NCBI RefSeq assembly: GCF_000315625.1
Contig: NW_005434611.1
Location: forward strand, 312,045-376,044
DNA length: 64,000 nt
Reading direction: 5' to 3'
Origin: Guillardia theta CCMP2712
Taxonomy: Eukaryota > Protista > Cryptophyta
Positions 76-42,989 of the stretch are shown in pieces; within the stretch, counting starts at the first letter, position 1, and each line of letters starts with the position of its first letter. The notes beneath the pieces are model-generated. The model worked only from the letters and a program-made list of their open reading frames with translations. It searched no databases and was not told where the DNA came from. A program made the position numbers and the translations under genes.

Positions 76-4582
<4,507 letters not shown>

Positions 4583-6096: not shown

Positions 6097-8300
6097 TCAT
6101 CCTTCCAGCACTCGCTCACAGCTGACCTTGATCAAAAATGTGCAGCGACGCAGCAGGTACGTTGGTCAAGTACATCTCCTTCCTCGTCTCTCAACTTGTC
6201 GCTCAGACTAGTGGCTATTGCTATTTCGTTGCCCATCGTGGTCTTTGTTCCAGCCTGACACTGACCTGCCGTCAGTCGTGCCCTCTGTCTCCGCTCTCTC
6301 AAACAACGTACAATGACGTTCATGGCCTCCAAGGGTCGGCTGATGCGACTGCACTTCGTACACTTCGGGCATGCCCTGGAGCTTGTCAGATCGAGTGAGA
6401 GACGATAGATCCCTTACCTCGTGGCTTCGTCGCACGTCCATGCTCTCACGCTCAGCTATGCGCTCTCCATGCAGATACTGAGCAACGAAGGTCAAGACAA
6501 TGGTCAAGGAAGTGTTGAGAGGAGGAGGGAAGAGAAGGGGAGGAGCGAGGGAAACAAGAGAAGGAGCAAAGAGGAGGAAGGAAAGGAGGGAGCGCCGTAG
6601 AAGGAGAGGGAAGGAGAGAAAGGAAGAATCAACATACCTCGCCATGGCAGACGATGTCGAGGCCCATGAGTTCCTCCTCCACGGCCACCCGCAGCCCCCA
6701 GACCGCATCGATGAGCTTGAGAAGCACGAGGGACCCGATGCAGGACCAGCCGATGGCGAACAAGATCCCGTAGAGCTGCAGGTAGAGCTGCTCCGGCTTC
6801 CCATAGAACGCTCCCTTGTGCCCCGATCCCTTCCCTGTGATGTCCTCCGTAGCGAAAAGACCCGTCATGATGCCTCCAACCACCCCCCCTGGCCCATGGA
6901 TCCCGAAGGCATCGAGCGCATCGTCGTACCCCAGGCGGTGTTTGAGCTGGCAGACGAAGTAGCAGACGGGACCCGCGAGAAGTCCGAAAAAGAAGGCTCC
7001 TGTGCAGTCAACATAGCCTGCTCCCGGCGTTATGGCCACTAGACCAGCAACGGCTCCACTGATGATGCCCAGCACACTGCCAGCAGGGCGTTATCCGAGG
7101 AAGAAGAGCAAGGAATGGGGAGAGGCACCTGGGGCGTTTGCGCATGATCCACTCTGTGCACATCCAGGCGAGGGCGGAGACGGCGGTCGAGATCTGAGTC
7201 ACCGCCATTGCCATGGCCGTCTGCAGCTCACCAAGTCAGAAGCTCCGTCAGGTCGACAGCCGCTCCCTCACCATCTTGTGCGCAGAGAGATACGAGCCAG
7301 CGTTGAAACCGAACCATCCGACCCACAGCAGGGATGCTCCAAGGACTGACACGAGGATGTTGTGTGGGCTGAAGTTCTCCTTGCCGTAACCTGTCCTGCT
7401 CCCGATGACAAGGCTGGGGGGGAGAGAGGTCAGTGAACGAGCAGCAAGCTCCTCCTCCCATGCTCACCTTGCCATGAGGCCTGAGCAGCCTGCTGCAACG
7501 TGCACTACGTTGCCTCCGGCGAAATCGAGGATGCCTTCGTCCTTGAGAAACCCGTCTGTCATCCAGTGGGCGTGAGCGATGGGGCAGTAGACGAGCAAGT
7601 GCCATAGCGCCATGAAGAGAAGCATTGGTGAGAAGCGCATCCGGTCCGCAAACGCTCCGCAGATGAGAGCCGGGGTGATGATAGCGAACATCAGCTCGTA
7701 AACCATGAAGAGAGGCTCTGGGATGGTGGGCGCGAGGACATGGCCGGTGTCGTACGACATTCCCAGAAGCCAGAACCTGGTGTGCCCTCCAAATAAAGGA
7801 GAGCCTGTCGTGAAGGAAAGGCTGTAACCAAAGCACATCCAAAGGACTGTGATCAAGCATACGATACTGAAGCTCTGCATCACCGTCGACAGCACGTTGT
7901 TCACTCTGACCATACCTCCGTAAAACAGAGCAAGGCCTGGAATCGTCATCATCAGCACCAGGGCAGAAGACGTGAGGACCCAGGCGCTGTCCCCGGCACT
8001 AAGAGGGTTGGAAAGTTTGACCTGGATATCGCTGACATTCACTGCTAGTTGCCTCACATTGACGCCATCCAAGAGCTTCTCAACAGTTTGCAACCTGGTG
8101 CTCAAGGGGTCGGTGCTCTGCCTGAGACCCGGGGATCTCTCCTTTTCGAGTTGGGATATTCTTGCTTCCAACGATTTGATGACGTTGGCCTGATTCTCCA
8201 CGATCTTCTTGAAGGAATCGTTGCTAGCGTCAATCTGACCTGAAAGGATCTCTCCGACCATTATCATAAACATAATCACATGATAGATAACTCTCGCCAT
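6097..8300 (-). CDS. amt: Ammonium transporter, AmtB/Mep-type, with N-terminal signal peptide and coiled-coil extension; multi-exon
   Basis: [92 protein letters not shown] and EEELMGLD; both pore histidines are present. The 3' exons are approximate. Confidence 0.95.
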
Positions 8301-9590
8301 GCTGTTCAAAGACTTTGTCTTTCTTCAAAGAATGATTTTCTCTAAATGTTTGCCCGATTGTGTGCAGCTGCTCCTACGTCAGTACGGGCGAGCATTCTGC
8401 CGGGGATGCTGATATCGAAGGAGTCTTATGATTAAGAAGTTGGCAAAGAGACGAGACAACAAACATCGCCATGCTCTGAGAAACTGTGCACGTCTGTACC
8501 CGATGAATGTACGTGAAACAATGGGAGAAGCGACGAGGTCGTCAGTGATACCCAAGAGAGCACGCACGGTGTGCCTTACAACGAGAGCATGGCATGTGCT
8601 TGTGGGTACGACAGAGAGGAACAAGAAGGGGACAGGAAGAGGTTAGAGAGGAGGAGGAGAGTCTGTTGCACAACAAGGGAAGAGGGAGAAGTCAGTTAGG
8701 ATGCGACGAGGAGGGATGGGGAGAGGAGGAGAGGTTGATGGAGGGAGAGCTCAGTTCCTTGTGAGCATCGATCGGGAGAGTGAACTGAACGTTGGCGGAA
8801 GCAATTATTGTTTAAAACTCTTTGTACAAAATTGAACTCTGGCATTGAGTACAATTGACATGATTTATTGGTACAGAATATGAACTAAATTCAAAAAGTT
8901 CTGTAAAACATACTTTGGGTCCTATATGGATACTTAGGAAGCCCTATGCTCCATCAATATTTTTTTTAGAGCCGCAAGGTCGTGGCCCTTATGTGTACTG
9001 AGTTTCGACTCAAAAACAATTTTTATGATTAAACCCATACAAACTAAAACATAATTAAAACTTAAAACTACTTATGCAATGCGCCAACCTATTTGGATTT
9101 CCGCCTCCTATAAGATTGGGGATGAGCGGGCCACACAAGGCGCCAGATAGCGACCAATGAAAATCCGGCAATACCTGAAAAAAACTCAGTGCCAGGCCAC
9201 CGGGAATCCACCTTGGACCGGGCCCCGGTGATACCAGCATCTAGTTATGTTTACTCAAAGTTAAGTTAAAAATCAGTAACTAGCCCGGGCCTGTTACTTC
9301 GGCAGTCCGTCCGGTCGCAGTGCCGCCGGGGCCCGCCGGAACTCAAAACCTACAATAGGCTATGAGCCTCTTTGGCGGAGCGAGGGAGGGCGGCACATGG
9401 CAAGGCCCCCCCCCCTTCCCCTCCCTTCAACTCCCTTCAGGTCGAGATGTCCTGCCTGGCGTCTCCTGGAGCCTTGCTGTCTCGTTCGAGAGACATAGGA
9501 CAGACGTGGTTCTTCTCCTTGTTGTCCTCCTTGCTTCCTCCACTGCCCCTTGCCCCTCTCACGTCTCCCTTACAAAGTCTCCCCATCAAC

Positions 9591-10250
9591 ATGTCTGTGT
9601 TGATTGACGACGCCGCCTCCTTGGCCTTCGTCCTGATGGCAACAGTCTTGGTATCCATGTTGATCTATCTCCTACTCCTGGATCAGGATAAGCCGCCACT
9701 TCGCGACCGACTTCTGGCTGTGCTCGTCTCGTGCTACTTGCTCGACACTAACGGATGTCACAGGCCATCAAAGCTTTGGATAGAGACAAGTACGTGAGGG
9801 GAGGCGCGTTGTCATCCAGAATCCATGATGCTCAGCATGCACGAAAAGTTCAGTGAACCGCAACAACATCTGTTTACTCTTGAACATAACAACATTCTAA
9901 TGGTACAGTTCCCGTAGTAGGATCAGACAACGATAACGGACGGCTCTTGCTCTTCTATCTCAGGTTGCAGAAGGCTCAACTATGATCAGTGCGTCAAGAA
10001 AGACAATGTGCGAACAAGCGAGCAAGAAACCGCATGTCTCATTGGACTTGGGATTTCTTCATGAACATCTTGGTTGTCCATCGGAACAAACACAGGGCTT
10101 GGCTAGAGCAACACGTGAGAAAATACGCGAGGATGGTGAAGAGACAAACTTCATCGGTTGTGGGCAATGCTCTGGACTGCAACAGCAGCTGCATACTCCT
10201 CAGTGTTTTGTTCTGCTGCTCGACAAGCGATCGAAGTTCTGCCACCTGAC
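9591..10250 (+). CDS. Hypothetical small multi-exon protein with N-terminal TM segment
   Basis: MSVLIDDAASLAFVLMATVLVSMLIYLLLL followed by plausible short GT-AG introns; no recognisable domain. Confidence 0.3.
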
Positions 10251-13200
10251 CAGGTTCTGTTGAGGTCTCGTTCGCAGAGAGAAGAACGGAGGGAGCGAAG
10301 GCGAGAGGGAGAGAGGAAGCAAGCAAGCTCTCTGGTCAGACCTCGTTGTCCATGTTGGTGCTTCTCTGCTCTATCGATCGAACCTTCGCGTAGAAAGTGT
10401 CGTCCAACTGACCGAAAAGTCTCAGACGTCACGTCACAGTCTGCAATGCAGGCATGCTCGAGAAATCAGCCACCTGCTTCCTGCTCTGCTCGAGCTGGCT
10501 TCCTAGCCTGCGGGCATGTTAGATGACGTTTGTCTTCGAGTCCATCAATCTCCGCATCCTCTGTCTTCACCTCAAAGTCATGCTGTAGAGAATGTTTGCC
10601 TGAGCTTCTATCTGACTCTCTTTGGAGATGAACTTCTTCGATCTTGAGGAGAGACAGAGTCAGCAGCAGGAGAGAAATGAAAGCAACATGCTTCGTCCGT
10701 CGGTAGTCGTGCAGCCTCTCCACCAGACGTGAAAAACTCTCTCTCCTGTATCGATGAGGATTTGCCTGGGCGCTTCCATGGGTTGTCAGGCGGTACAACG
10801 GGGTCTAGAGCCTCTCACCTGTAACAAGCCCCCTTCTTCTTGGCTCGGACGTTGATCACTCCCGGAAGATTCTTCGAGGAGGTTCAGTTTGTACAGGAAC
10901 GTGGAGGAACAGAGCAAGGAGGGCGAGAAGGGCAAGGAATTGAGAGAGAGTTCAGCACCAGGATCTGACTCAAAGTCGATTCTGGCGAGAAATCAGCCTG
11001 TGCAGGAGGTGAGCTCAGGAGAAGGAGCGAAAGAAGACGATAGACTGTTGGGGAGCAGAGCAGGTCGGAGGAAGTCAAGTGAAGCGCTAGAAGAGTGAGT
11101 CCAAAGAATACCATCTTGTAGTCATCAGACGGGATGACAATGAAAGTGCTCGTCTTGTTGGCGACTCCTGTGGCCTTCAAAACTCTCCCTCCGAACCTTC
11201 AACAACAGCATGTCATCGACTACGTCGCAATCTACTTCATCTCCACCTCTGCGCGAGTTGGGATGGCAGAGTTCTGTTCTCCTGCAGAAGGAACGCGTCA
11301 AGGTGGGTCTATACTTTGCCCTCCCTCCCGCCGTTACATCGAGCTCGACGATGAGTCCTGACATGTTCCATAGAATTGGCCTGCCTGCCGTCAAGGCGGA
11401 AAGAGAAGGAGCGAGCAGACCCGTTGCCAAAGTGAGTGTAATACCTCCACCATGCCTGGGAGGAAGTGAACACAATGAAGTAAGGAAGACAGTCAGTCAA
11501 AGACATGGGGAGATGTAAGACGCGGTGAAGTGGTTGGATGCAGGGGCAAGTAGAAGGGTAAGAGCAGTGTTGAGAAAAGGAGACGCAAAGGAGGGATGTT
11601 GAGTAGATGTAGGACGACAAATCCGATTATCAAGACCTGATGGAAGAACACCCAACAACCTCACCTGGATCAATCTCGTAGATGCGATCTTTTTCTGCAG
11701 GAATGATTTTCTTGACTGTTGGCCGTATGAGACTCTTTGCCACGTGAGACGAGACACTTTTAGAGCTGACCTGAACGACGGCTATGAATCGTTCCTCCAC
11801 TTTTGTGGGCGTTGTCCTGACTCCGACAGTCATGTTCGAGCTGACATGACAAACTGACTTTCACCATTGGAGGAAGACGCTGGTGAAGAAGTTTGCGATA
11901 AGCATTCCTCCGAATGCCAGGAGAACGCAAGAGATCCGACCGATGATGGTCAGAGGAAACAGGTCCCCTGCTCGATGACGCATTTCAACACCTCTCACAT
12001 CTCCTTCCCATCTTGCGATGAGCTCCTTTCATCATCACCGTATCCCACGGTAGTCGCCGTCACGATGGAGAGCCAGACACAATTCTCAAAGTGGAGGAGG
12101 ATGGGCTGCGATGGGGCTTCACCGATGCGAACTGACGAAGAAAATTCCATAAGCTCGAGTCCGGTGGTGCCGCGAGCATTGAAGGAATACCAAAGTATGC
12201 ACCGACAGCGAGGAGGAACGATGTGCAGACGAACAGGACGAGGAAGGGCGACCTAATGGAAGTTAGATGGGAGCAAGAAGAAAGCAGAGGAATCGATCAG
12301 CTACTTCCTTGAGAAGTTGCGAGAGAGTGAAAGGAGGAGGATGAGGACGTAGAGGACGAGAGGGTAGGGGGCACGAGGAGGAGGAGGAGAAGGAGAAGGA
12401 GGAGGAGGAGGAGGAGGAGGAGAAGGAGGAGGAGGAGGAGGAGGAGGAGGAGAAGAAGGAGGAGGAGGAGGAGGAGGAGGAGGAGAAGGAGGAGGAGAAG
12501 GAGGAGGAGGAGGAGGAGGAGGAGTAGGGGGAGGAGGAGGCTTGTCAGGAAAGGAAGGGTCGAGGGGATGTAAAGGAGAGATACCGATGAGTGAAAATTC
12601 TGAACCAGAAGAGCTGGGAAGTCCAAGTTGAGCTCAGCAAGGAGAGCTGCTGTTATCCACCTGAGACTTGATGTCGACGCCTGCCAACCGAGCCGCGAGC
12701 AGAGACTGCCAGAGACATTAGGAAGAGGAAGGGGCGAGGAGGGAGAAGGGAGGAGGGAGGATGGAAGAAAGAGGAAGGAGGACAGACGAGGCTGGAGGGA
12801 AGAAAGAGGAGGGGAAGAGGAGAGGACGTGGAGAGGAAAGGAAGTCGTTTGAGAGAAGGAGCTCTCACGTTTAGGTCATGGACGCAGACGATTTCACGGA
12901 GGGTTCTTGTGAGGAGGAACAGCCGGAACCTCCGCATGCCACGTCAGCACTCGAATGCAACGATCCCTCCCTGCCCTCCCTGCCCCCCGCTCCGTCCAAA
13001 CTCACATGGAGAGAAGAGCGCCAATGGAGTCGGAGGAGTAGATGACCTTCTCCTACAGCATGTGAGGAGGAGACGGAAACGAGAAGAGACTGACTCCGAG
13101 CTGACTGTGACTCTCCCACTCAACATCGAGGAAGGGAGGACAGTGAAGCATTGCGATGAAGCACTCGAAGAAGCACTAGAGAAAGTCAAAGAGCTCGTAG

Positions 13201-27829: not shown

Positions 27830-29068
27830 CATGCACTTGAACGCCATGCTAGCGGAGGAGTCAGAGGAAGGAGGCGAAAGGCAACTGAAAGGAGACCTGA
27901 AGAGGGCTCGTGTATCCGATGGCAGCAATCTGACCGGATGTGCCGCTGAGAGGACGAGTAAGTATCACCACAGAACATCCTCCTCCTCCGTCTTTACCTC
28001 CCTCCGAACTGAGCATATGGCAGGGTCCCCGGGGCATTAGGGTTGAGCAGCCCGTTGTAGACTGACTCTGGCAGAGGACGAGGAGTCAGCAGCTGCTGCC
28101 GCATCACCATCTACAGACCTGCTTGCGTCTTCAACTGGTAGGGGGGCTCTCCGTCTCTTCCAACCCCGAAGGTCAAGTCGACGGGAGTTCCTCCTCCCAT
28201 GGCAAGGGCCTGCTCCACCTCAGCACGTGCGGGAAGGACGCGATTCAGGTGCTCACCTGGGTCTTGGCTGACGTACGTGCGCCGAGTTTCCCCTTGCTCG
28301 TCCCTCTCCTGCTGCTTGTCAAGATCCGGAAGCAGCAAAAACGTTGACCGAGAGACCTGGCAAGCTGCCTCTGCGATTGCACTCTGAGCTGTCGAAGAAT
28401 CGTTTGCTGCGCACGAAGCTCAATCTCGTCAAAGTTGTGAATCTGCACGTTGAGAATGTAAGATGCTCCCCACGTTCACCATCCAAGAGTAGTACCTGCT
28501 TGGTTTCAGCTCCATCTCCATATCTTGCTTGAGTTTGATTCTCCGCAGCCTCTTGCGCTACTTTGGCACCGAAGTAGATGGCAGGGGTGCACTTCAACCA
28601 ATGTCGTCCGCATGACTCCGAATCATGATTGCAGCAAACGTCCGTGTTCTGGCAATCCTTGTTCTCTACACATGACTGACCCATAAATCCATGCTTGATG
28701 ATCGGTTTGCCGCTGAAAGGATCCTTTCCGTCTAGGTAGACGCCATACCCACTGCCAACCCACGACGGACCCTGAGCCTCCTCCCTCTCAGGAGGAGGAT
28801 ACTGCAACACTTCTTTCCGCGACATGCCGGGCCAGTAGGTCGATTCCCGTTGGTCATAGAAAGGGCTCTGATGAGCGAAGTAAGCCAACGGGTGGTAGGG
28901 AGTTGCGGTCCATTCCGGGTCTTCCCTGACAAGAAACGAGGACAGAGACTGAGGAGCCATACGATCGACAAGATAGGTTGGGGAGGAAGCCCTGTAGACG
29001 ACTAAGACTACAACGAGCACTGAAAGCGATGCAGCAACGATGCTGGTCACATCTCTGTTGAACGCCAT
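27830..29068 (-). CDS. Hypothetical signal-anchored or secreted protein with a Cys-rich module
   Basis: MAFNRDVTSIVAASLSVLVVVLVVYRA; CVENKDCQNTDVCCNHDSESCGRHWLKC. The 3' exons are approximate. Confidence 0.5.
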
Positions 29069-29665
29069 CTCGCTGACTACACAACACACTCGAGTTCGTT
29101 GGGTCTGTCATCACAAATTTTCAGAGGTTCAGCATTTTACAGATTCGAATACCTTGCCAGGTTCCTGCTCACCACATCAATGCCTGTAAGAGAGCGCTGT
29201 CAGCGTCGAGACATCGCATGAGCCATCAAGAGGAAACAACAGCTGCCAGAATGGAATCGTTGACTTGGAAGTGTGATAAGCGAGATGAGGCCCATGTTGA
29301 GAGCTTTGGATTATGAAGAAATGAGAACAAACGGTGAGAAGGGCTGGCAGGAAGAGGGTATCTCCAGGAAATAAGCAAGTCCACCAGGGGAGTCAGGAGA
29401 ATGCAGAAAGCGGAAGCATAGACATGAGTGGAAAGGACAAGTCATCAAGTGGGAAAGAGAAAGTTTAGTTGAATTAACGAGGGATGGAGCAGGAAGAGGG
29501 AGAAGAAAAGGGAGGACGAAGGGGAGGTGAAGGTTTAGTTGGAGGTGGAGGTAGAGGTGGAGGTAGAGGTGGAGATGAAGGAAGTGGAGGAGGAGGAGGT
29601 GGTGGTGGTGGTAGAAGAGGAGCGCAGCATGTTAGTACAGACAGCATGAAGAGACACTCATTTCA

Positions 29666-30552: not shown

Positions 30553-32241
30553 ATGGGCTCCAACAACATCGTCAAAGTTGCTCTGGTCGTCATGTTAGTG
30601 CTTGCGACTCCAGGTGAGTGCGTTGTTGTGAGCATATATTGCATATCCCCTCACCTGATATCCCTCAACTCCTCTTTGCTCGTGTTGTCGCTCTTGAACA
30701 TGACAGTTTCTTGTTTCACTCTATACTGACAGGCTTCTCCACGGCCATTCCCGATGATCTTCATGGTCTCGCCGATCGCTGGGAGCAGTTCGCGAAGGGT
30801 TCGTCCACTGCGCTGCAGCGAACAAACTTCGGCGTGGTAGAGCATGACGGTCAAATTGCCATCTTTGGAGGCCAGAGACCGACGGGGAATGGTGCGATTT
30901 ACCTCAACGACCTCTGGACGTTGCAGAGTGGTGGAGAGTTCAGTAACGTTGAATGCTGCGGGTGGTTGCCGAGAATGAAATTCGCGTATGCCGTTCACAT
31001 AGTCAACGGAACAAGAACTCTCTTTGTCATCGGCGGCTACAGTTACAACGGAAACGTCCCCTTCTTCTACAGCGACGTCTGGGCGACGTCAGATTTTGCC
31101 AGGTTCTCCTTCGTCCAGTTGAGTCCTACAGGCTTCTTGCCTCCCTGCTCCGGCTGCGTCGCAGTATCCTTCAAGAGCTACCTCTTCCTCATCGGCGGTT
31201 GCTACAGCAGCGACAACAGCTGCGCCACCATGGTCACACAGATCTACTACTCCTCGGATGGTTCGGGCTGGCAGAAGGCAATTTCAGATTTGGACGCCAT
31301 CACGCTTTGGGAAAACTCGAAACCTGACAATGTCATGGCGGCTGTGAACGGAGAGGACCTGGTCCTCGTGCAGTACAACAGCAACGGCAACGAAGTGTGG
31401 AGCTTGTCGTGGGATGAAAGAACGAAGAGGTTGAACATCGGAGCAGGTTCCATAGGAACGATCTCTTCCAGCAATGGGGGTGCTAAATTCTCTGCCGTCT
31501 TTCTGTCCTTGTTCTCAAACCTCTGGCTCCTTACTGGCAACACCTTCTCATCCACCAGCTCCTCCTACATTGTTTACAGCTCCGACAGCGGAGGATCTTG
31601 GGCCACGGACAGCACCCAGGACCAGCAACAGCAGCAGCTGCTCATGAGGGAACGAGCAGCAGGCATCGTGTGGAACAAACGGCTGTGCGTGCTCGGGGGA
31701 AGAACCTATTCGAACAGCGTCCTCTCGAACATGTGGTGTTCAGTACCGCCCAAATTCCCTGCTCCTTCTCTCTCTATCGTAGATCCGCCCTCGCAAGACG
31801 GTTGGTTCTCAAGTCCAGTCAAGGCATCCATCCGGACCGGAACAATCCCATCGGAGTCTTGTGCTGAGGTGCCTCCTCCTTCTCTCCCCCGATCTATCTC
31901 CCTCTACTTTCTCGCACCCCTCCCTCTGCTCGCTTCCTCTCTCCCTCCTCCGCCTTGCTTGTGCTGCATCCCTTGGTGCCTCGACCTGAGATTTGATTCA
32001 GATACGATTTCAAGTCACCACAGCTCAAAGTCCTGCTCCTCCTACTCCTCAAAACATCCTCTACTCCTCCTCCTTCAACATCGACCTTGGGGGGCTTGAC
32101 AGCCAGGCCATGTACGTCTACATGCAGGTGAACTCGGAAGAAGCAGGAGAAAGGAGAAAGGGATGGAAGAGGAAGAGGACGAGGACGAGGACAACGACGG
32201 GGAGGGAGGGAGAAGGGAAGGGGAGGAGCAGGAGTGTGGAT

Positions 32242-32273
<32 letters not shown>

Positions 32274-35200
32274 TCTTCTAAATTGCCTTCAGGTCACCTT
32301 CCCCTGCTCCGAGGGCTTCACGGCCTCGGACGTCTCCTCGACTCCCATCAATGTGATGCAGAAGCTGAGTAGCCCCTCCTGCTCCCCGAAGGGCTCGATC
32401 TCGGTGAAGGGAAGTGCAACAGCGACAGCCGAGCTTCTCTGCCAGACCAACGCAGCTGAAGTGACTGTGAGCTACTCCTACTCTGGAGATGCGAACACAC
32501 TGCGGAACTCCAACTCCCCTGCCAGCCTTGTCCTCGTCGACGGAGCTTCCACTGTCAAGGTCTGCCGTCTGACATGCTTTACAAGCATCTGATGATTTGT
32601 TGCTTCTCTCTCCTACCCACACTCCTCCCTTCCTCACCCCATCCATCCCCTCTGCTTTCTGAACCTTCTCTCCACTACTATCTTCTCCTCCTGGGCTCCT
32701 CCCCCCCATTGACTCCTCCTCCTCCTGGACTCCTGCTGGCCTCCTTCCCAACCTCCTCCCCCCCCTCTCAGGTTTCCTGTAAGGCTCCTCACTGGGTGGA
32801 CAGCGACGAAGTCTCTTTCTCCTTCACCGTCACGAGGGAGGCAGGGGAGGCGCCGAAAGGATCAACTTCCTCCTCCTACACCACCACGAGAGCCTCTAGC
32901 CCCATCGAGTCCACTCCTTCCCCCTCCCCCTCCCTCCCCCCGCAGTCTCCCTCCGTCTCCTTCCACAGCTTCTGCTGCGACCAGACGTGCAGGTCTACCT
33001 GCTTGCTGCAGACAGCGCAAGACGTCGTCCTGCACCTTCAAGGTTCCAACCTCAACAGGGTCGAGGACGTCAGGGTCGGTGGGCGAGCGTGCGGGAGGGT
33101 AGGGGAGGCAGCAGCCATCAGTCTTGTTTGCATCTTCGCCCCTGGGCTGGGAGAGGAGCAGGTGACGGTGGGATGGACCGACAGCGGCGAGACCCGGACC
33201 CTGCAAGTCGCCCGCATCGTCTACCCTGCTCCTGTCGCTGCCCTCCTCGCCTTCTCCTCCGCCCCCCCCTGCACAGGCGCCACCGTCACCATCTCAGGCT
33301 CCAACTTCGGTTCGCTCCTAGCTGGCCACGTCTTCGAGGGCGTCGCCTCCACCTTCCTCGGTCATGAAGTTCGCGGGATGGTGGGAGCCAGCTGGGCTAG
33401 GCAGGTCATGTGGGTCGCCGACTCGTCTGTTCTCGTCATGGCACCACCTGGAGCAGGAGCCCAGCTGCGAGTCCAGCTGTTCTTAGGTGAGGATGCCGAG
33501 TTACAAGAAATAGGACGAGGGGCAAAGATAGAGAGGAGCAGAAGGGAGGCGAAGAGGAAAGGGGAGGAGCAGGAGGAGCAGGAGGAGCAGAAGGAGCAGG
33601 AGGAGCAGGAGGAGCAGGAGGAGCAGGAGGAGCAGGAGGAGCAGGAAGACTGAGTGTATGCAGATGGAGTGGGCGTGGTGCAGCAAGCTTCCAGCTCGCA
33701 TCAGTTCAGCTACTCTCCTCCTCGCATCTCGTCTGTCAGGCCCTCGATAGGAGGAGCAGAAGGCGCCATGCTGGTCACTTTGACGGGAGTCAACTTCGGT
33801 TGCACCGCCCCTGACCCTCCTGCTGTTCTCCTCGGCCCTCAGGCTTGCAAGGTTGCCTCCTCCCTTCCTGACCACCAGCACTTCTCTTGGCCCTCCTCAT
33901 CATCATGATCATCATAAGCAGCAGCAGCAGCAGCAACACCAACACCAACACAACCTCCTCCTAAACCACCACCACCACCACCACCACCAACATTCTCCTC
34001 CTCCTCCTCCTCCTCCTCCTCCTCCTCCTCCTCCTCCTCCTCCTCCTCCTCCTCCTCCTCCTCCTCCTCCTCCTCTTCTCCTCTCATCTCTGCTCTCCCT
34101 CATCGTCTCCTGCTTCCCTCACCTCCGATTCACCATATCCTATCCTTGAAGCACATTTCTCACCCTCCTTCGTCTTCTTGATCCTCTTCCCCTCTCCTTG
34201 TTTGACATGATGTCAGTCCGTCACTCGTATCAGCGACAATCAGATCATTTGCCTGTCGCCTCCCAGGAATCAAAGTATTCAATCAACAAGCGTGAATGTC
34301 GAGGTGAAGATTGTTTGACCTGCAATATTCTCATCTCATATTCTCCCTCCCTCCCTCTCTCCCTCCCTCCGTTCAGGTACAAGTAGCGGGTCAGTCAGCT
34401 GTCTCCCCGAGCTCCTACCTCTATGTAGCAGCTTCGCAACCTGTCACCATCTTCTTCTCATCCCTTACAGAGGTGAGCAAAGTTCGGACTTCTCCTCCTC
34501 CTTTACCTCCTCCGTTACCTCCTCCTTTACCTCCTCTCTTACCTCCTCCTCCTCCTTTACCTCCTCCTCCTCCTCCTTTACCTCCTCCTTTACCTCCTAC
34601 TCCTCCTCCTCCTCCTCCTCCTCCTTCACCTTCTCCTCCTCCTCCTCCTTTACCTCCTCCTTTAACTTCTCCTCCTCCTCCTCCTCCTCCTCCTTTACCT
34701 TCTCCTGCATCTGCTCCTCCTCCTCCTTTACCTCCTCCATCTCCTTTACCTCCTCCTTTACCTCCTTTACCTCTTTTACCTCCTCCTTGATTTGGTCCTC
34801 CTCATATTGCCAATCTACCTCCTCTCCTGGTCCTTTAACGCACAGACTCTAGGAGCAAGTCAAGAAGTTTATCCTGTTCCTATCGTCAAGGTTGAACGCA
34901 TTGTCTGTCGATCAAGTACGAGAGAGATGGAGCGAGCAAAAAGATTGATNNNNNNNNNNNNNNNNNNNNNNNNNNNNNNNNNNNNNNNNNNNNNNNNNNN
35001 NNNNNNNNNNNNNNNNNNNNNNNNNNNNNNNNNNNNNNNNNNNNNNNNNNNNNNNNNNNNNNNNNNNNNNNNNNNNNNNNNNNNNNNNNNNNNNNNNNNN
35101 NNNNNNNNNNNNNNNNNNNNNNNNNNNNNNNNNNNNNNNNNNNNNNNNNNNNNNNNNNNNNNNNNNNNNNNNNNNNNCCCTCCTCCTCCTCCTCCTCCTC

Positions 35201-36288
35201 CTCCTCCTCCTCCTCCTCCTCCTCCTCCTCCTCCTCCTCCTTCGCCTGCTCCTCTGATGTCCCGCAGGGAACGTTCAGTGACTCAGGGCTTCAAGTTACG
35301 GTGATTTTTCCTCCCTTTCCTCCTCTTCCTCCTCGCACTCTCCTCGTCTCATCAAATTTTCCTCGCTCTATCTCACCTTCGCCTCTTTCCCCTTACTTCC
35401 TTCACCTGCTCATCCCAGGAGCTCCTCCTTCCTTCCGGTGAGCGCATCGTCATCAATTCCTCGGCCAACACCCTGCCCTCGACCCCAGCAGGTACTCCAG
35501 CTCTCCCCTACCAGCAGGTGGGTGACGCACGTCCCACCAGGGGCTCCAGGAGGCAGTTCGAAGCTCCCGAGCTCGCAGATCGCCGTCATAGTCTGCGCTG
35601 TCATCGTCATCGTCTGCAGCTTCTGCTACCTCGCTCCCCGCCTTCGCAGCCGCCTCTTCCCCCCCCGCCAGTCTCACCCCAACTTCTCCCCCAACGTCGT
35701 CTTTGCCCAGTCTGAGCTCGCAGACGGACTGCCTTCCATCCGAGTCGTCAGCGCCGACTCGGTCAGCTGGATGTACAGCAGGGAGGAGGAGGTGGGAAGG
35801 TGCGAGCACTGCCAGCGCTCAGGCTTCCGCGTCTGCATCCACCGGACCATGAAGTCCATGTGGGAGGAAGTCGATGTTCAGCTTCCTCCTTCCGACGACA
35901 TTGACGAAGAACTCTGCGTCGTCTGCCTCGACCGCCCTCGGTACGCCTTCCTTCCCCCCCCCCCCCCCCCCTCCGTTCTCCTAGCTCCATTCCTCCTCGT
36001 CGTTGTCCTCTTCATTGTCCTCCTTGTTCTGCGAGGATCTTCCTCCTGCTCCTCCTCCTGCTCCTCCTGCCGCTGCATCTCACTCCTAGCAAGGAACGTC
36101 ATCATCGTGCACGGAAACGAGGAGAAGACCCTGCACAAGGTGAGAACTCAGTGCTGGCTGCCTGCTGGGTATGGTCGGAGCTGACTAGAGGAGCCCAGGT
36201 CACTTGCTCTCAGTGCACTCAGAGGATCCGGGAGGCCGGCGGGCCCTGCCCGATGTGCCGGCAGCCCATCTTCGACGTCCTCGAGTGA
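30553..36288 (+). CDS. Receptor-like type I membrane protein: signal peptide, Kelch repeats, beta-sandwich/IPT-TIG domains, S/P stalk, TM, cytoplasmic MDM2-type RING
   Basis: MGSNNIVKVALVVMLVLATP|GFSTA; Kelch-like repeats (IAIFGG..LNDLW, LFVIGG..YSDVW, LFLIGG, LCVLGG..LSNMW); TIG-like motifs (LQGSNL..VRVGGRAC, VTISGSNFG, FSYSPPRISSVRP..VTLTGVNFG); TM IAVIVCAVIVIVCSFCYLA; RING CVVCLDRPR|NVIIVHG..LHK|VTCSQC..CPMCRQPI. The N gap at 34950-35177 lies inside the model. Confidence 0.75.
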
Positions 36289-37209
36289 CCCCTCCTGTAC
36301 ACTACCAGCCCATGTATATAAACTTGATGCCCTCATCTTTACTCAAAGTTAAGTCAAAAATCAGTACGAGGCCAATTAGGAGAGTACTAGGCTGCCACGG
36401 TCGCACAGGCCATACGGCGAGAAGCCTGAGAAAAGATCGGTACGGTCAGTGAGAACCAACCCCGTGATCCTGCCCTGGTGAACCGTTCAGTTCTGTCCCC
36501 CAAACTTACTATGTGACTGATACCTCGCGCACGTCCCGAGTTCGTTTCCCCGCGGCCATGCCAGCGATGTCGCTGCGGCCGGTCAGTACCGTGACGCCTC
36601 CCCCGTAGCCCCCGGCCTCTAGACCGGAATCCTGCTGCTGTACTTTAGTCAAAGTGAGGTTAAAAATCAGTACGAGCAGGAGCCGCCCACATGCTCGGAA
36701 ACTTCCGAAGTTCGGCACTGGCTTGATCCGCACGGGCCGTTATCGCTGTGACTGTGACCCCCGGGGGATCGGGACAGAGACGGTCTGACTGACAGCTGGG
36801 GGAGTGACAGCGACTGAAGACTCTCCGAGTCAGCAGCCCAGTGACGTGACCTGTGGTAAAGTCCTCGACAGTTTTCGTACCTCAGGTACCCCTACCTCAC
36901 AAAGATGTCCTTACCCTTACCCCTCTATATACACATTTTCTCTAGTAAGTGGCTAAGTAATTAAGGATACCCTAACACCCTCTGGATCATGACAAGGCAC
37001 CCCCTACCCTCCCCAGGCCACAAACCGCCCCCTTCTAACCCTTACATGAAGGAGGATCTTTTTAAAGTTCCGTGTTTCTCTCTTTTCATAGAGCTTCTCC
37101 TTCTTCTCTACCTCCCTCCCCTTGTACTCCCGCAGTTGTCCCATCTCCACCTCCGAGAAACCTTCGACTATGTGTCGTCAAACAGTCTGTGTCGACTGCA
37201 GTGTTTTGC

Positions 37210-39354: not shown

Positions 39355-40901
39355 TCACTTCACTTCACGTCCGCGGGGATCCATGGGCCACCTGTACCAG
39401 AATGTCACCTCCCTTATTTCCTCATCGGCAAGTGCGCTACCTTTGGCCGCTGCTGCTCTCAGCCGTCGCTCACGGCGCTGTCAAAGAGGACGCACGGTCA
39501 CAGACGCAACAAGCACAAGGAAGTACTGGCACCTGTCTCTCCTCAATCCGCACCTTCTCGACTTGCGCTCTCTCAACCTCACCGTTGACCAGCGCATTTC
39601 TGTCCTCCCTGTCCAACACGTCAGAGCAGTCCATGGGTGCAGTCCCGGAGTCCTGACCTGAATCGGGAGTCTGAAGGCAGACACTTCTCAAGAGGATCGA
39701 ACACAGGGTCTCGTCCTGTGTTCGAGGAGATGTCCCAATACCTATGCCCGTTGAAGTCCAAAAAGCCCAGGAAAGAGCCCTCAACGTTACAGATGGAATT
39801 TATGATCTCGCCTTGTGCATCAAGTCGGTTGATAGACCCAATGAAAGTATCTGAAGGCAGCCCCTTGCACGGGTTCAGCTCGATAGTGCAGCTGATAGAG
39901 TTCTTCGTGTCCAAGAACGTGTATCCCCCCAGCACCTCTTGAATGACATCACCCCAGTAAACGTTGTTGTATCTGTCCATCGTGAAGCCAACCTCGATGG
40001 TGGTCCCGTCAGGAAACTGACACATTCGGATGCCCGACTGCTTCACATACAGCTTGTTGTAGCCGAATGAGGCCTCGTAGGTTGACCATCCGATATACTG
40101 GAAACTGTTGTTGGGTCCAACGACTTGCCATGAGGTTACTGGGGGGTGATGACTGGTCTGCTCCAAGTAGAGTCTTACTCCACCATCAAAACTTGCTTGC
40201 AGAGTCTCTCCCAGCGTCGGATTGAAGGGCTTGACAAACTGGGAAGTCGTATGGATACAAGCAATGAAGCAAGCAGTCACATGCTTTAGACGCTCGACAG
40301 GATCTGTTTCCATTGCAGCTCGAGACAGGTAATGCGGACAGAAGCAAAACTGATATGCCGCACACTCAAGAATCGTCCTGGGCTGACAGCAGCGTACGGG
40401 GAAGGTGACTGACAGCAGGTTCTGACCGGAAAGGAGCTTCCTTCCCATCTGCTTCACAACTTCGGCAACGACGCTCCTGCTGACTTTGATCCCCTCATAG
40501 TCTGTGTTGATCAGTCCTCCATTGGGATGAGCCAGCTTGTGTCGACACTTCATCACTTTTTCTAGCAGGCGCTCCACATCCGAATCCTTCATGCGATCTT
40601 TGGAACGACCCGCAAGCTTCTTGGCGCTGTTCCAGAGCCCTCTCAAAGACTTTCCCGCCATCTTCCGAAAACCGGATCTCTCAGCCGAGAGCTTCTCATG
40701 ATGCTTGTCTTCAATGCCAATGTCATCAGATATGTCGACGTAATCATTCGAGTTTTCTTCTTCTTCTGGGTTTGCCTCCACGCACATTCCTCGAAGTGCT
40801 TCCTCCACTTCGTCTTCATTTTCTTCACCATTAAATACACCGTCAAGAACGATCTCGTCATCCTTGACCTGGTTGCGCTGTGGCATCACGGTTGTGGCCA
40901 T
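39355..40901 (-). CDS. Oxysterol-binding protein-related protein (ORD only, acidic N-terminus)
   Basis: LLSVTFPV, DPVERLK, KPFNPTLGET, LEQTSHHPP, LPSDSRFR|ED, EKVRIEERQ|RRERR. Confidence 0.93.
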
Positions 40902-42989
40902 GTCCTGTAGAAAACAGTCAGTCCTGTCACCAACTCGTCGAAAACCATAGGCGTGGTTCGACGCCTCCTCCTCTTGTAATCTCCGCTTTCTCATCACGGA
41001 CTATTCTAATCGCCAAAGCCTCTGCTCCTTGAACCTACAACATTCCCACTCTTTTGTTCCAATCCAAATCCATTTCATTCACAGGTAGTCCAAAGGTCAC
41101 TTTCCATCCAAACTCATCTCGCTTCCAGAATTCTTTCTCGAATCCCTCTCATTTTCGATTCTATCACTTTGGACATACTTGACTTCACTTCATCTATGCA
41201 TGGTTCACAGCTGATCCCTCGTCCCGGTTCACTCCGATTCCTCCGCTCTCTCGGTTTCTTTCACCTCTCGTCCATTCGCTGCACTCAAATCATTCCTGGT
41301 TTTTGGTCTCTTGCTCTTTTCTCTCCTCACTCTTTCCCGTTTCCTCCTCCTCCTTCAGTCTTCCCGCTCCTCCTTCCCCTTGTGTCAGGCTCTTTCTCCT
41401 CCTGCCATCTTCGCACACATCAGCCTTTACCACTCTACCCCCCATTGACTACCCCCACATGTGCCACACCCACCCACCTTTCTCACTACCCACCCATCAA
41501 TTTTTGTAATTTTTGATTACAAAGCAGGGGTAATCGATTGCTCCGATTTGAACCCTTACCTACACAGATTTCATTTTTGGAAGTACCCCACCTACATTTG
41601 GAGAGACCCACCCCTCCATTCCTGATAAAGTACCTACCCACCCATAGGGCAAAAGAAAGGAGAATGGATTTACGAGGGGTACCCATGCACCCCCCAAGTG
41701 TGGTACCCCATCGGAGCACACATTGTACCCCACCACCCTCACAGACTTGCTTTTAGCAACTCGAATGCCACATGTTGTACCCCTCACCCTTTTAAATGAC
41801 TGCTCGGTACCCACCCTTGATTAAACATTTCTGACCCACCCCACCCCCGAGAGTTGTTTTACCACCCACCCTTCTCCCATACGAGTCACTTGTACCCCTC
41901 TATTGTTTACTACTCCAGCTTCGTGACCCCCTGGTGGATACCTCTTCTCTTTTTATTACCCCATGAGGGGTGGGGGTACTACAGGTGGATAGAGGGATAC
42001 AACGTAATTGAGGGCTGGGGGACGGACAGGGTAGTCAATGGAGGGGGTAGGGTATCTGTTGTAGTGGAGTGGAAGTGAGGTCATTGAGTGGGGTACTCTT
42101 GGGGTATTGAGTGGGGTAGGGTAGTCTTGATGGGGAGGTATTTGTTAATTTCATGGTGGGGTAGTCAAGCTGTCAGCTGAGTCATGATCAGGAGTGGGGG
42201 CAATAACACACCAGGGGTAGTAAATCCACTCAATCGGAGGGTAGGGGTAGTAAAAGGTCTTGGTTGCTCGGGGGTTGCATGGGGTGATGCTGCTGGTCAA
42301 TTTTGATAGGTGGGGGTGGAAGTGAATTATGGTCAATAGTAGGGTGGGTAGTGGTTGTTTCCAGGAGGTACCCCTTTTTTCCTCATAAAGTACCCCCTGT
42401 CGATTCCCAGTCCCACCACCCACCCCGCTGGTTCGATAATGAAACTTTGCGTATAACTTGGCGACTGGTAGGCATCTCCGACGGACACGTTCACTGCCCG
42501 GTGCTCCGAGGTTCAAGGTACGGTCGGTCACTGAGCTACTATGCCGGGGCCGGCCCCCGGGACCCCGGCCGCGCCGCAGCAGTGCCCGGCCGGGCCCACG
42601 CCGCCTCCGCTGCCCGGCGGGACCTCCGAGCTCGGGCCTGGCCGCAGTTGCCGGGGACCTCCGAGGCTCGGCCCGACTGCGGCCCGAGTCCCGGGTCGGG
42701 CCCGCGGAAACGGTCTTCAGATGACTGAGTCAACCGTCGACGAGTTGAAATCTATGATTTCAAGTTTAACTAACAACAAGTTGTACAACTGTGACCGTGA
42801 CTGTTCCGAGTGACGGTGGCCCCGCTGCCGCGCCGGGAGTGACTGATGACTGCAGTGACTCAGGCCCACCTGAGACGGTCCCCGCCCGGGATTGAGATTC
42901 GGAGTCCGGCCCCGGGCCGGTTCACTCTCTGACCAGCCAGCACGAGAAACGTCACGACTAAAGACGGCAAGTCAATCAAATTCTGCTCA

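Follow-up and report, generated by a model that had tools for sequence, protein, structure and literature searches.

The gene examined here lies at positions 30553–36288 on the plus strand of a 64,000-nucleotide (nt) stretch of the Guillardia theta CCMP2712 genome (contig NW_005434611.1, positions 312,045 to 376,044; this whole stretch is referred to as the window). We conclude that the locus probably encodes, as one gene, a receptor-like RING ubiquitin ligase (E3), predicted to be a type I single-pass membrane protein of about 1170 residues. Its domains follow one another in the order signal peptide, Kelch propeller, beta-rich modules, Ser/Thr/Pro-rich linker, IPT/TIG repeats, juxtamembrane domain, transmembrane (TM) helix, a zinc-knuckle-like element of the form C-x2-C-x7-C-x-H and, at the C-terminus, a RING of the MDM2 type. 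An initial annotation of the window had read the locus as a surface receptor with ubiquitination as its output. Of that proposal, the evidence below supports a single chain, a RING of the MDM2 type and a predicted topology like that of a receptor; for the surface location and the activity, as for a ligand, we infer rather than observe.

A single chain across the assembly gap

Manual rebuilding from the three-frame translation yielded a GT-AG gene with 14 sequenced exons, all of compatible phase, and introns of 49–380 nt (Table 1). A run of N separates exons 9 and 10, and the initial annotation had warned that the ectodomain and the TM-RING part might not belong together. The evidence on this point comes from the sister species Hanusia phi, whose orthologue (P0006, from an MMETSP transcriptome; UniRef A0A7S0HJB5) is a single open reading frame (ORF) of 1166 amino acids. 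It was retrieved with residues 860–1105 of the annotated G. theta protein as the query, in a search restricted to proteins of comparable length. The two proteins are 57% identical from the signal peptide through the last RING residue, and the precomputed Pfam domains of the Hanusia protein are Kelch, TIG and PF13920. As this protein derives from mRNA, the complete architecture is carried by one transcript in a sister species. Together with a gap-free metagenome contig that presents the same blocks in the same order, the Hanusia ORF, which holds the Kelch, TIG, TM and RING parts, bears out the proposal of a single chain.

The orthologue also indicates what the gap contains. Between the last TIG and the motif GGFADSGLQVT, the Hanusia protein has 63 residues that are absent from the public G. 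theta model. The first 21 are matched by exon 9, and the remaining residues (about 42) had no match anywhere in the window when the Hanusia segment was used in tblastn; they must therefore lie in the N run at 34950–35177. In Hanusia, this unmatched segment begins with FYVVPS and finishes with ANSP. The exons on either side of the run match consecutive parts of the Hanusia transcript in the same order and orientation, so the gap is not a mis-join. On these alignments we regard it as settled that the gap hides part of a conserved juxtamembrane domain and holds no gene boundary. The warning was thus justified insofar as coding sequence is hidden, but the Hanusia transcript and the metagenome contig argue that the gene is neither split nor mis-joined.

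Other routes to the hidden sequence gave negative results. The DNA contig sets (2011; runs X1 and X2) stop at 34941 and resume at about 35256, leaving the gap unbridged, and a search for an unplaced contig with the missing exon, in which the Hanusia segment was compared with the genome, returned no match, the query exons being too short for the tool. No RNA run containing the stretch emerged from the sequencing-run search, and a Pfam scan of the juxtamembrane domain matched no family.

It is very improbable that the locus consists instead of two genes, or of a scaffolding mis-join, with a secreted Kelch/TIG protein followed by a small TM-RING protein starting, for example, from the ATG at 35257. 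Although the N run is located at the putative junction, the Hanusia transcript passes through this point unbroken, with the flanking exons as consecutive, co-oriented parts of it, and the metagenome homologue has the same block order without a gap. In-frame splicing from the ATG at 35257 to the TM exon is possible via the other reading frame of 35419–35540, but such a model needs the other frame of 35268–35491 and would destroy the GTFSDSGLQVT/LLLPSGERI segment that is conserved in both homologues. The essentially nil RNA coverage of the G. theta exons in the sampled data is in keeping with two genes; a word-index search of the databases, for its part, found no protein of 78–247 amino acids with this tail.

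An MDM2-type C2H2C4 RING

The RING is spliced from three exons (35541–35940, 36094–36139 and 36199–36288). Exactly this splice, which the initial annotation had proposed, matches PF13920 (zf-C3HC4_3) with an E-value of 1.9e-12 (47.2 bits; cut-off 27); the same family is matched in the annotated protein and in both homologues, and the exon junctions are confirmed by the unbroken orthologous transcript sequence. The middle exon encodes NVIIVHGNEEKTLHK, which is the same in the Hanusia transcript except for a change of N to D. The RING-H2 model zf-RING_2, by comparison, reaches 16 bits against a cut-off of 27.3.

The zinc ligands follow the pattern C-x2-C-x10-H-x7-H-x3-C-x2-C-x10-C-x2-C, and all eight are invariant in the three homologues. 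Compared with solved structures, the domain matched MDM2 (1.3e-10) and MDM4 (7.6e-9), and the next matches (XIAP and others) followed only at 0.013, with MGRN1 at 0.15. The classical PF13920 RING of another G. theta membrane protein (L007) served as a control; its best match was MGRN1, and MDM2 appeared among many comparable matches. Since the control displays no preference for MDM2, that of the receptor RING is specific. The receptor RING and that of MDM2 have the motifs RPxN..IVHG and PCPxCRQPI in common. The C2H2C4 assignment made initially therefore holds, with three additional residues between the His ligands.

Three further positions are invariant in the three homologues: a Val in the first CxxC, a Pro in the last CPxC, and an Arg following the last Cys, at the position of MDM2 Arg479. 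In RING–E2 complexes, residues at these positions contact the ubiquitin-charged conjugating enzyme (E2~Ub). In the inactive MDM4, the residue matching Arg479 is a Lys (PMC6372010). The domain thus has all the sequence features of an E2-binding MDM2-type RING and is a putative ligase. It is located at the extreme C-terminus and ends in a short hydrophobic tail, IFDVL. A Protein Atlas comparison placed the RING part near generic PF13920 clusters and gave no usable match for the whole protein or the juxtamembrane domain.

The C2H2C4 RING has been described as unique to Mdm proteins and serves as a criterion of MDM membership within Metazoa (PMC5543598; PMC6372010). The G. theta protein has in common with MDM2 and MDM4 the C2H2C4 ligands, the C-terminal position, the specific similarity and the Arg at position 479, but it is membrane-anchored and non-metazoan, with three more residues between the His ligands and a shorter tail. 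A Pfam scan of the whole protein found only Kelch, TIG and RING families, and no SWIB/p53-binding domain, acidic domain or RanBP2-type zinc finger. Given the absence of these domains, it is not a member of the MDM family and has the RING subtype alone in common with it.

A second G. theta gene (L004/L026; G000:C24:82225-82404, minus strand) ends in a C2H2C4 RING with the exact MDM2 spacing. Among solved structures, this RING matched MDM2 at 3e-15, and the best match after MDM2/MDM4 was MUL1 at 5e-6. In its 240-amino-acid open frame, a Cys-rich repeat (YYCGRRMNQCRCGSCDGVCGPNNGCPCNSC) occurs twice ahead of the RING, and no TM helix is evident.

Membrane topology and ectodomain

Two hydrophobic segments were found in the whole protein, the N-terminal signal peptide and the TM helix IAVIVCAVIVIVCSFCYL. 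Four Lys/Arg residues occur in the 15 residues after the helix and one in the 15 before it, a bias from which the C-terminus is predicted to be cytosolic. We accordingly predict from the sequence a type I topology with the RING in the cytosol. Between the helix and the RING lies the C-x2-C-x7-C-x-H element, the zinc-binding residues of which are invariant in the three homologues.

In exon 2, the Pfam families PF24681 (8.6e-13) and PF24981 (7.8e-11) were matched, and Kelch_4 and Kelch_1 exceeded their cut-offs. PF24981, the model of the ATRN-type propeller, scored 42.2 bits, which is under its cut-off of 50. AlphaFold2 (AF2) modeling from a three-sequence alignment was confident over about four blades only, and a Foldseek search with this partial model retrieved the six-bladed propellers of Keap1, KLHL12, LZTR1 and the designed SAKe with E-values of about 1e-9 to 1e-10. 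As modeled, the fold is a generic Kelch propeller and not a specifically Attractin-like one.

The IPT/TIG family PF01833 matched the annotated spliced protein at 1.8e-16 (60.3 bits; cut-off 20.9) in two stretches, with the match at residues 788–874, and scored 65.5 bits in the Hanusia orthologue. A third TIG, as well as beta-sandwich modules between Kelch and TIG (Big_3_5, E 0.034), is plausible on weak support. The signal peptide, Kelch propeller, IPT/TIG, linker, single TM helix and CxxC..CxH element listed in the initial annotation were all present at the places given there; of its several beta-sandwich/IPT-TIG domains, TIG was recovered in two stretches, and the third TIG and the beta-sandwiches may be present.

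A small family, and similar layouts elsewhere in the genome

An exhaustive HMMER search of 1.8 billion proteins with the tail exon returned the protein itself, one cluster of homologues (P0003/P0005) and two spurious repeat proteins. The cluster comes from marine metagenomes; its members are 39% identical to the G. theta protein over tail and RING and share with it both the C-x2-C-x7-C-x-H element and the His-x7-His spacing. The corresponding genomic locus (L019; JGI metagenome 3300052690, contig Ga0504710_0002012, locus 6235-10798) is located on a 24.6-kb contig of an uncultured marine eukaryote that contains no N. Encoded there in order on one strand are a signal-peptide-like start, a Kelch block (PF24681 2.3e-9; 28% identical to the G. 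theta Kelch, E 1e-8), a TIG block (8e-17) and a TM-RING block. With residues 538–908 of the model as the query, tblastn against this homologue gave an E-value of 5e-30. In current databases, the family thus consists of G. theta, Hanusia phi and one uncultured marine eukaryote.

The metagenome gene has few introns, and the same contig recurs in several marine metagenomes (L013–L018; ENA SOLA samples, Logan runs). Prokaryotic gene finders place a '73-aa ORF' between its TIG and RING blocks; this is in fact an exon of the juxtamembrane domain.

The initial annotation had advised a search for paralogues with the same RING and exchanged ectodomains. In the G. theta genome, the Kelch exon and the tail exon are both single-copy, with no paralogue found for either, but the layout itself recurs: at least two other genes (L007 and L010) encode an unrelated ectodomain, one TM helix and a C-terminal PF13920 RING. 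L007 (G000:C14, ORF at locus 481-1686, with the near-duplicate L008 on C484) has a Cys-rich EGF-like ectodomain on a Ser/Pro stalk, and among solved structures its RING is closest to MGRN1 (7e-8), so that this protein amounts to a direct fusion of a receptor chain with an MGRN1-like RING. L010 (G000:C34, locus 1207-2967, minus strand) is a single-pass protein with a classical C-terminal PF13920 RING.

Comparison with known receptor–ligase systems

In plexin and Met, a beta-propeller head is carried on an IPT/TIG stalk and followed by one TM helix, the propeller being a Sema domain and the output a GTPase-activating protein (GAP) or a kinase. By general knowledge, the G. theta protein resembles them in placing a propeller on an IPT/TIG stalk ahead of the membrane, with Kelch in place of Sema and a RING in place of the GAP or kinase.

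Receptor-like ubiquitin ligases are an established class, in which RNF43 and ZNRF3 are direct fusions and MEGF8 and Attractin recruit MGRN1 non-covalently via the motif MASRPF (Kong et al., bioRxiv 10.1101/2020.05.25.113944). Because direct receptor–E3 fusions are known, the kind of protein described here is rare but not unprecedented. RNF43/ZNRF3 and the PA-TM-RING proteins (GRAIL/RNF128, RNF13, plant RMR) are likewise single-pass type I proteins with an ectodomain fused to a cytosolic RING, the ectodomain of these known proteins being ligand-binding. The G. theta protein would function in the manner of this class but is a member of none of its families. The PA-TM-RING family differs in having a PA ectodomain and a RING-H2 and in occurring in animals and plants, whereas the cryptophyte protein combines Kelch and IPT/TIG with a PF13920/C2H2C4 RING; the Pfam scan found no PA domain in it, and no sequence relationship to the family was detected. 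MUL1 and plant SP1 are likewise anchored in a membrane, in their case the outer membrane of an organelle, and end in a PF13920 RING, but with two TM helices and no large ectodomain.

Attractin and MEGF8, to which the initial annotation had drawn a parallel, resemble the G. theta protein in coupling a single-pass Kelch receptor to a PF13920-family RING, with ubiquitination of membrane proteins as the output (in G. theta, the proposed output). In the animal system, however, receptor and ligase are separate proteins joined by the cytoplasmic MASRPF motif, and MEGF8/ATRN-like proteins have been reported only from animal-like eukaryotes (Kong et al., bioRxiv 10.1101/2020.05.25.113944). Neither MASRP nor MA[SG] occurs in the G. 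theta, Hanusia or metagenome proteins, and the Pfam scan of the G. theta protein found no CUB, EGF, laminin-EGF, PSI or C-type lectin domain. Its RING is far closer to MDM2 than to MGRN1 (1.3e-10 versus 0.15), and G. theta itself encodes a separate MGRN1. What remains of the parallel is a generic Kelch propeller; the ATRN-type match below its cut-off, the missing companion domains, the lack of MASRPF and the distance of the RING from MGRN1 all speak against a closer relationship.

Proposed mode of action and alternative readings

We hypothesize that the ectodomain faces the cell exterior or an endomembrane lumen and binds a protein or glycan partner, and that the cytosolic RING would recruit a ubiquitin-charged E2 and ubiquitinate its own chain or neighbouring membrane proteins. 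Ubiquitination could then set the endocytosis or degradation of the membrane proteins so marked. The most likely switch would be the ligand- or density-driven pairing of two receptor chains, by which two RINGs would be joined; the logic would be that of a receptor kinase, with ubiquitin as the output. MDM2-type RINGs require dimerisation for activity (PMC6465955). Given this dependence, and a RING that is C-terminal with a hydrophobic tail, pairing of the chains would be the most economical switch.

Several observations weigh against the proposed receptor-like ligase. Relative to MDM2, three residues are inserted between the two His ligands of the RING, and 9 residues follow its last Cys as compared with 13; with this insertion and the shorter tail, MDM2-like dimerisation is not assured, and a RING homodimer prediction spoke neither for nor against it. 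AF2 modeling of the cytoplasmic tail from the three-sequence alignment was unusable (mean predicted local distance difference test score 41). About 42 codons inside the N run are unread. In the available G. theta RNA evidence, which comprises one raw-read run sampled at 6% and an older, probably RNA-derived contig set, the exons are essentially uncovered, and coverage this meagre makes no statement on expression. Finally, with a family this small, the conservation arguments rest on three sequences.

The same molecule might instead reside in an endomembrane (endoplasmic reticulum (ER), chloroplast ER, Golgi or vacuole), where a lumenal Kelch/TIG region would read cargo or glycans, the cytosolic RING would tag membrane proteins to be sorted or degraded, and the protein would act as a sorting or quality-control E3, as plant RMR and other PA-TM-RING proteins do; we consider this possible, though unlikely. 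A signal peptide and a single TM helix give the topology only, so that the sequence does not separate plasma membrane from endomembrane; many membrane RING E3s are, by general knowledge, endosomal or located in the ER. For the receptor-like ligase class as a whole, Kong et al. leave 'extracellular or luminal' open. On the other hand, a large ectodomain that combines a propeller with a Ser/Thr/Pro-rich linker, an IPT/TIG stalk and a juxtamembrane domain is, by general knowledge, typical of surface receptors such as plexin and Met. No retention motif came to light, although no search aimed at one was made. It is more doubtful still that the RING is catalytically silent and serves as a dimerisation or docking module of an adhesion or recognition protein, with a partner supplying ubiquitination. 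MDM4 offers the precedent, having the same C2H2C4 RING and no intrinsic ligase activity (PMC5543598; PMC6372010). MDM2 Cys449 is one of two residues that distinguish active MDM2 from the inactive MDM4 (PMC6372010), and its counterpart in the G. theta protein is Ile; the longer His–His loop is a further departure from MDM2. Yet all three homologues have an Arg at the position of MDM2 Arg479, where MDM4 has Lys, and they also retain Val and Pro where RINGs usually contact the E2.

Gene model, annotation and surroundings

The locus is publicly annotated as GUITHDRAFT_142384 (XP_005827971.1, hypothetical protein; UniProt L1IXN1, 'IPT/TIG domain-containing protein'). The rebuilt model is identical to XP_005827971.1 except for exon 9: in the public model, exon 8 is spliced straight to exon 10 over the N run, and the 63-nt exon at 34853–34915 is left out. 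That exon is bounded by the acceptor ctctag|GAG and the donor CAA|gtacga and is of phase 0 at both ends. The full-length protein should therefore measure about 1170 amino acids as compared with 1105 in the public model. In practical terms, one exon has to be added to the public gene model, and about 42 more codons lie within the assembly gap.

Table 1. Exons of the receptor-like RING gene and the assembly gap within it (positions in the window)
Feature	Position	Strand	Basis
Exon 1: start codon and signal peptide	30553..30613	+	In-frame stop before ATG 30553; hydrophobic N-terminus; donor CAG|gtgagt
Exon 2: Kelch beta-propeller	30733..31868	+	Pfam; partial AF2 model; metagenome homologue
Exon 3: beta-rich module after the propeller	32002..32127	+	GT-AG, in phase; identical to annotated protein; colinear with Hanusia orthologue; no match to Pfam
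Exon 4: probable Ig-like beta-sandwich	32293..32559	+	Sole family match weak (Big_3_5, E 0.034); conserved in Hanusia orthologue
Exon 5: end of beta-sandwich, Ser/Thr/Pro-rich linker, small Cys cluster, first TIG repeats	32772..33486	+	Pfam TIG 1.5e-6
Exon 6: TIG repeat	33664..33851	+	Pfam TIG 7e-4 for the exon alone
Exon 7: last TIG, continued	34217..34303	+	GT-AG, phase 0; matches annotated protein and orthologue
Exon 8: end of last TIG	34377..34472	+	tblastn with Hanusia segment, 59% identity; phase 0 at end
Exon 9: first 21 residues of conserved juxtamembrane domain; absent from public model	34853..34915	+	71% identical (15/21) to Hanusia transcript after the last TIG
Assembly gap (N run)	34950..35177	.	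Must hold about 42 juxtamembrane codons and intron sequence
Exon 10: juxtamembrane segment GTFSDSGLQVT	35268..35300	+	Conserved in Hanusia orthologue and metagenome homologue; phase 0 at both ends
Exon 11: juxtamembrane segment ELLLPSGERIVIN...	35419..35491	+	LLLPSGERI identical in Hanusia orthologue
Exon 12: TM helix, cytoplasmic linker, C-x2-C-x7-C-x-H element, acidic stretch, first RING CxxC	35541..35940	+	Hydropathy peak; positive-inside bias
Exon 13: middle of RING with both His ligands	36094..36139	+	Spliced sequence equals annotated protein
Exon 14: last four RING Cys, Arg after the last Cys, short C-terminal tail, stop	36199..36288	+	PF13920 1.9e-12; MDM2 alignment 1.3e-10; TGA 36286-36288

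Other exon candidates were rejected. An exon 9 at 34846–34890 (TLGASQEVYPVPIVK), aligned to the tail of the metagenome ORF, gave way to 34853–34915 in another frame on the evidence of the Hanusia transcript. A 19-nt exon 11 and two acceptors leading directly from exon 10 to the TM exon were discarded as well, the orthologue supporting 35419–35491 joined to 35541. The window is nuclear DNA; its introns are short and of the GT-AG type, and many are rich in CCT/CT.

A dispersed short repeat is found downstream of the gene on the plus strand, at 36338–36371 and 36662–36676, with the core GTCAAAAATCAGTACGAG and a commonest variant that begins with GTT. It starts about 50 nt past the stop codon, and the second copy follows 306 nt on. 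If one mismatch is permitted, the genome contains 580 copies, compared with 0 for the reversed control. The depth of the DNA contig sets jumps about 1000-fold over the repeat, and RNA reads covering it end in A-runs directly behind. It appears to be located at the 3' termini of many polyadenylated RNAs or close to them; alternatively, it could be a transcribed element resembling a short interspersed element (SINE) or a miniature inverted-repeat transposable element (MITE). The repeat had no match in Rfam, and an Rfam scan of the 3' flank found nothing. Of the neighbouring genes, a minus-strand ORF at 28319–29089 looks unrelated, and so does the downstream gene at 39621–40997 (minus strand), a 458-amino-acid ORF with the oxysterol-binding-protein signature EQTSHHPP.

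Implications

Receptor-like ubiquitin ligases are few and come mostly from studies of animals (RNF43/ZNRF3, MEGF8–MGRN1). The gene described here would add a natural receptor–E3 fusion from a cryptophyte alga in which the sensor is of a wholly different kind, with IPT/TIG repeats as the stalk of a Kelch propeller. As the layout of ectodomain, TM helix and RING is encoded by at least two more G. theta genes, such signalling logic may be common in the lineage.

A C2H2C4 RING with specific similarity to the MDM sequence is encoded by two genes of G. theta and is also present in Hanusia and an uncultured marine protist, which points to a pre-metazoan origin of the MDM RING or to multiple origins. 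As a speculation that we consider rather unlikely to hold in full, the C2H2C4 RING could be no invention of the animal p53–MDM2 system but an older, dimer-active module that a cryptophyte lineage would have wired to the cytoplasmic end of a surface receptor, so that ligand-induced pairing of the ectodomains leads directly to ubiquitination. If this were true, the protein would be a real 'receptor ubiquitin ligase', operating like a receptor tyrosine kinase.

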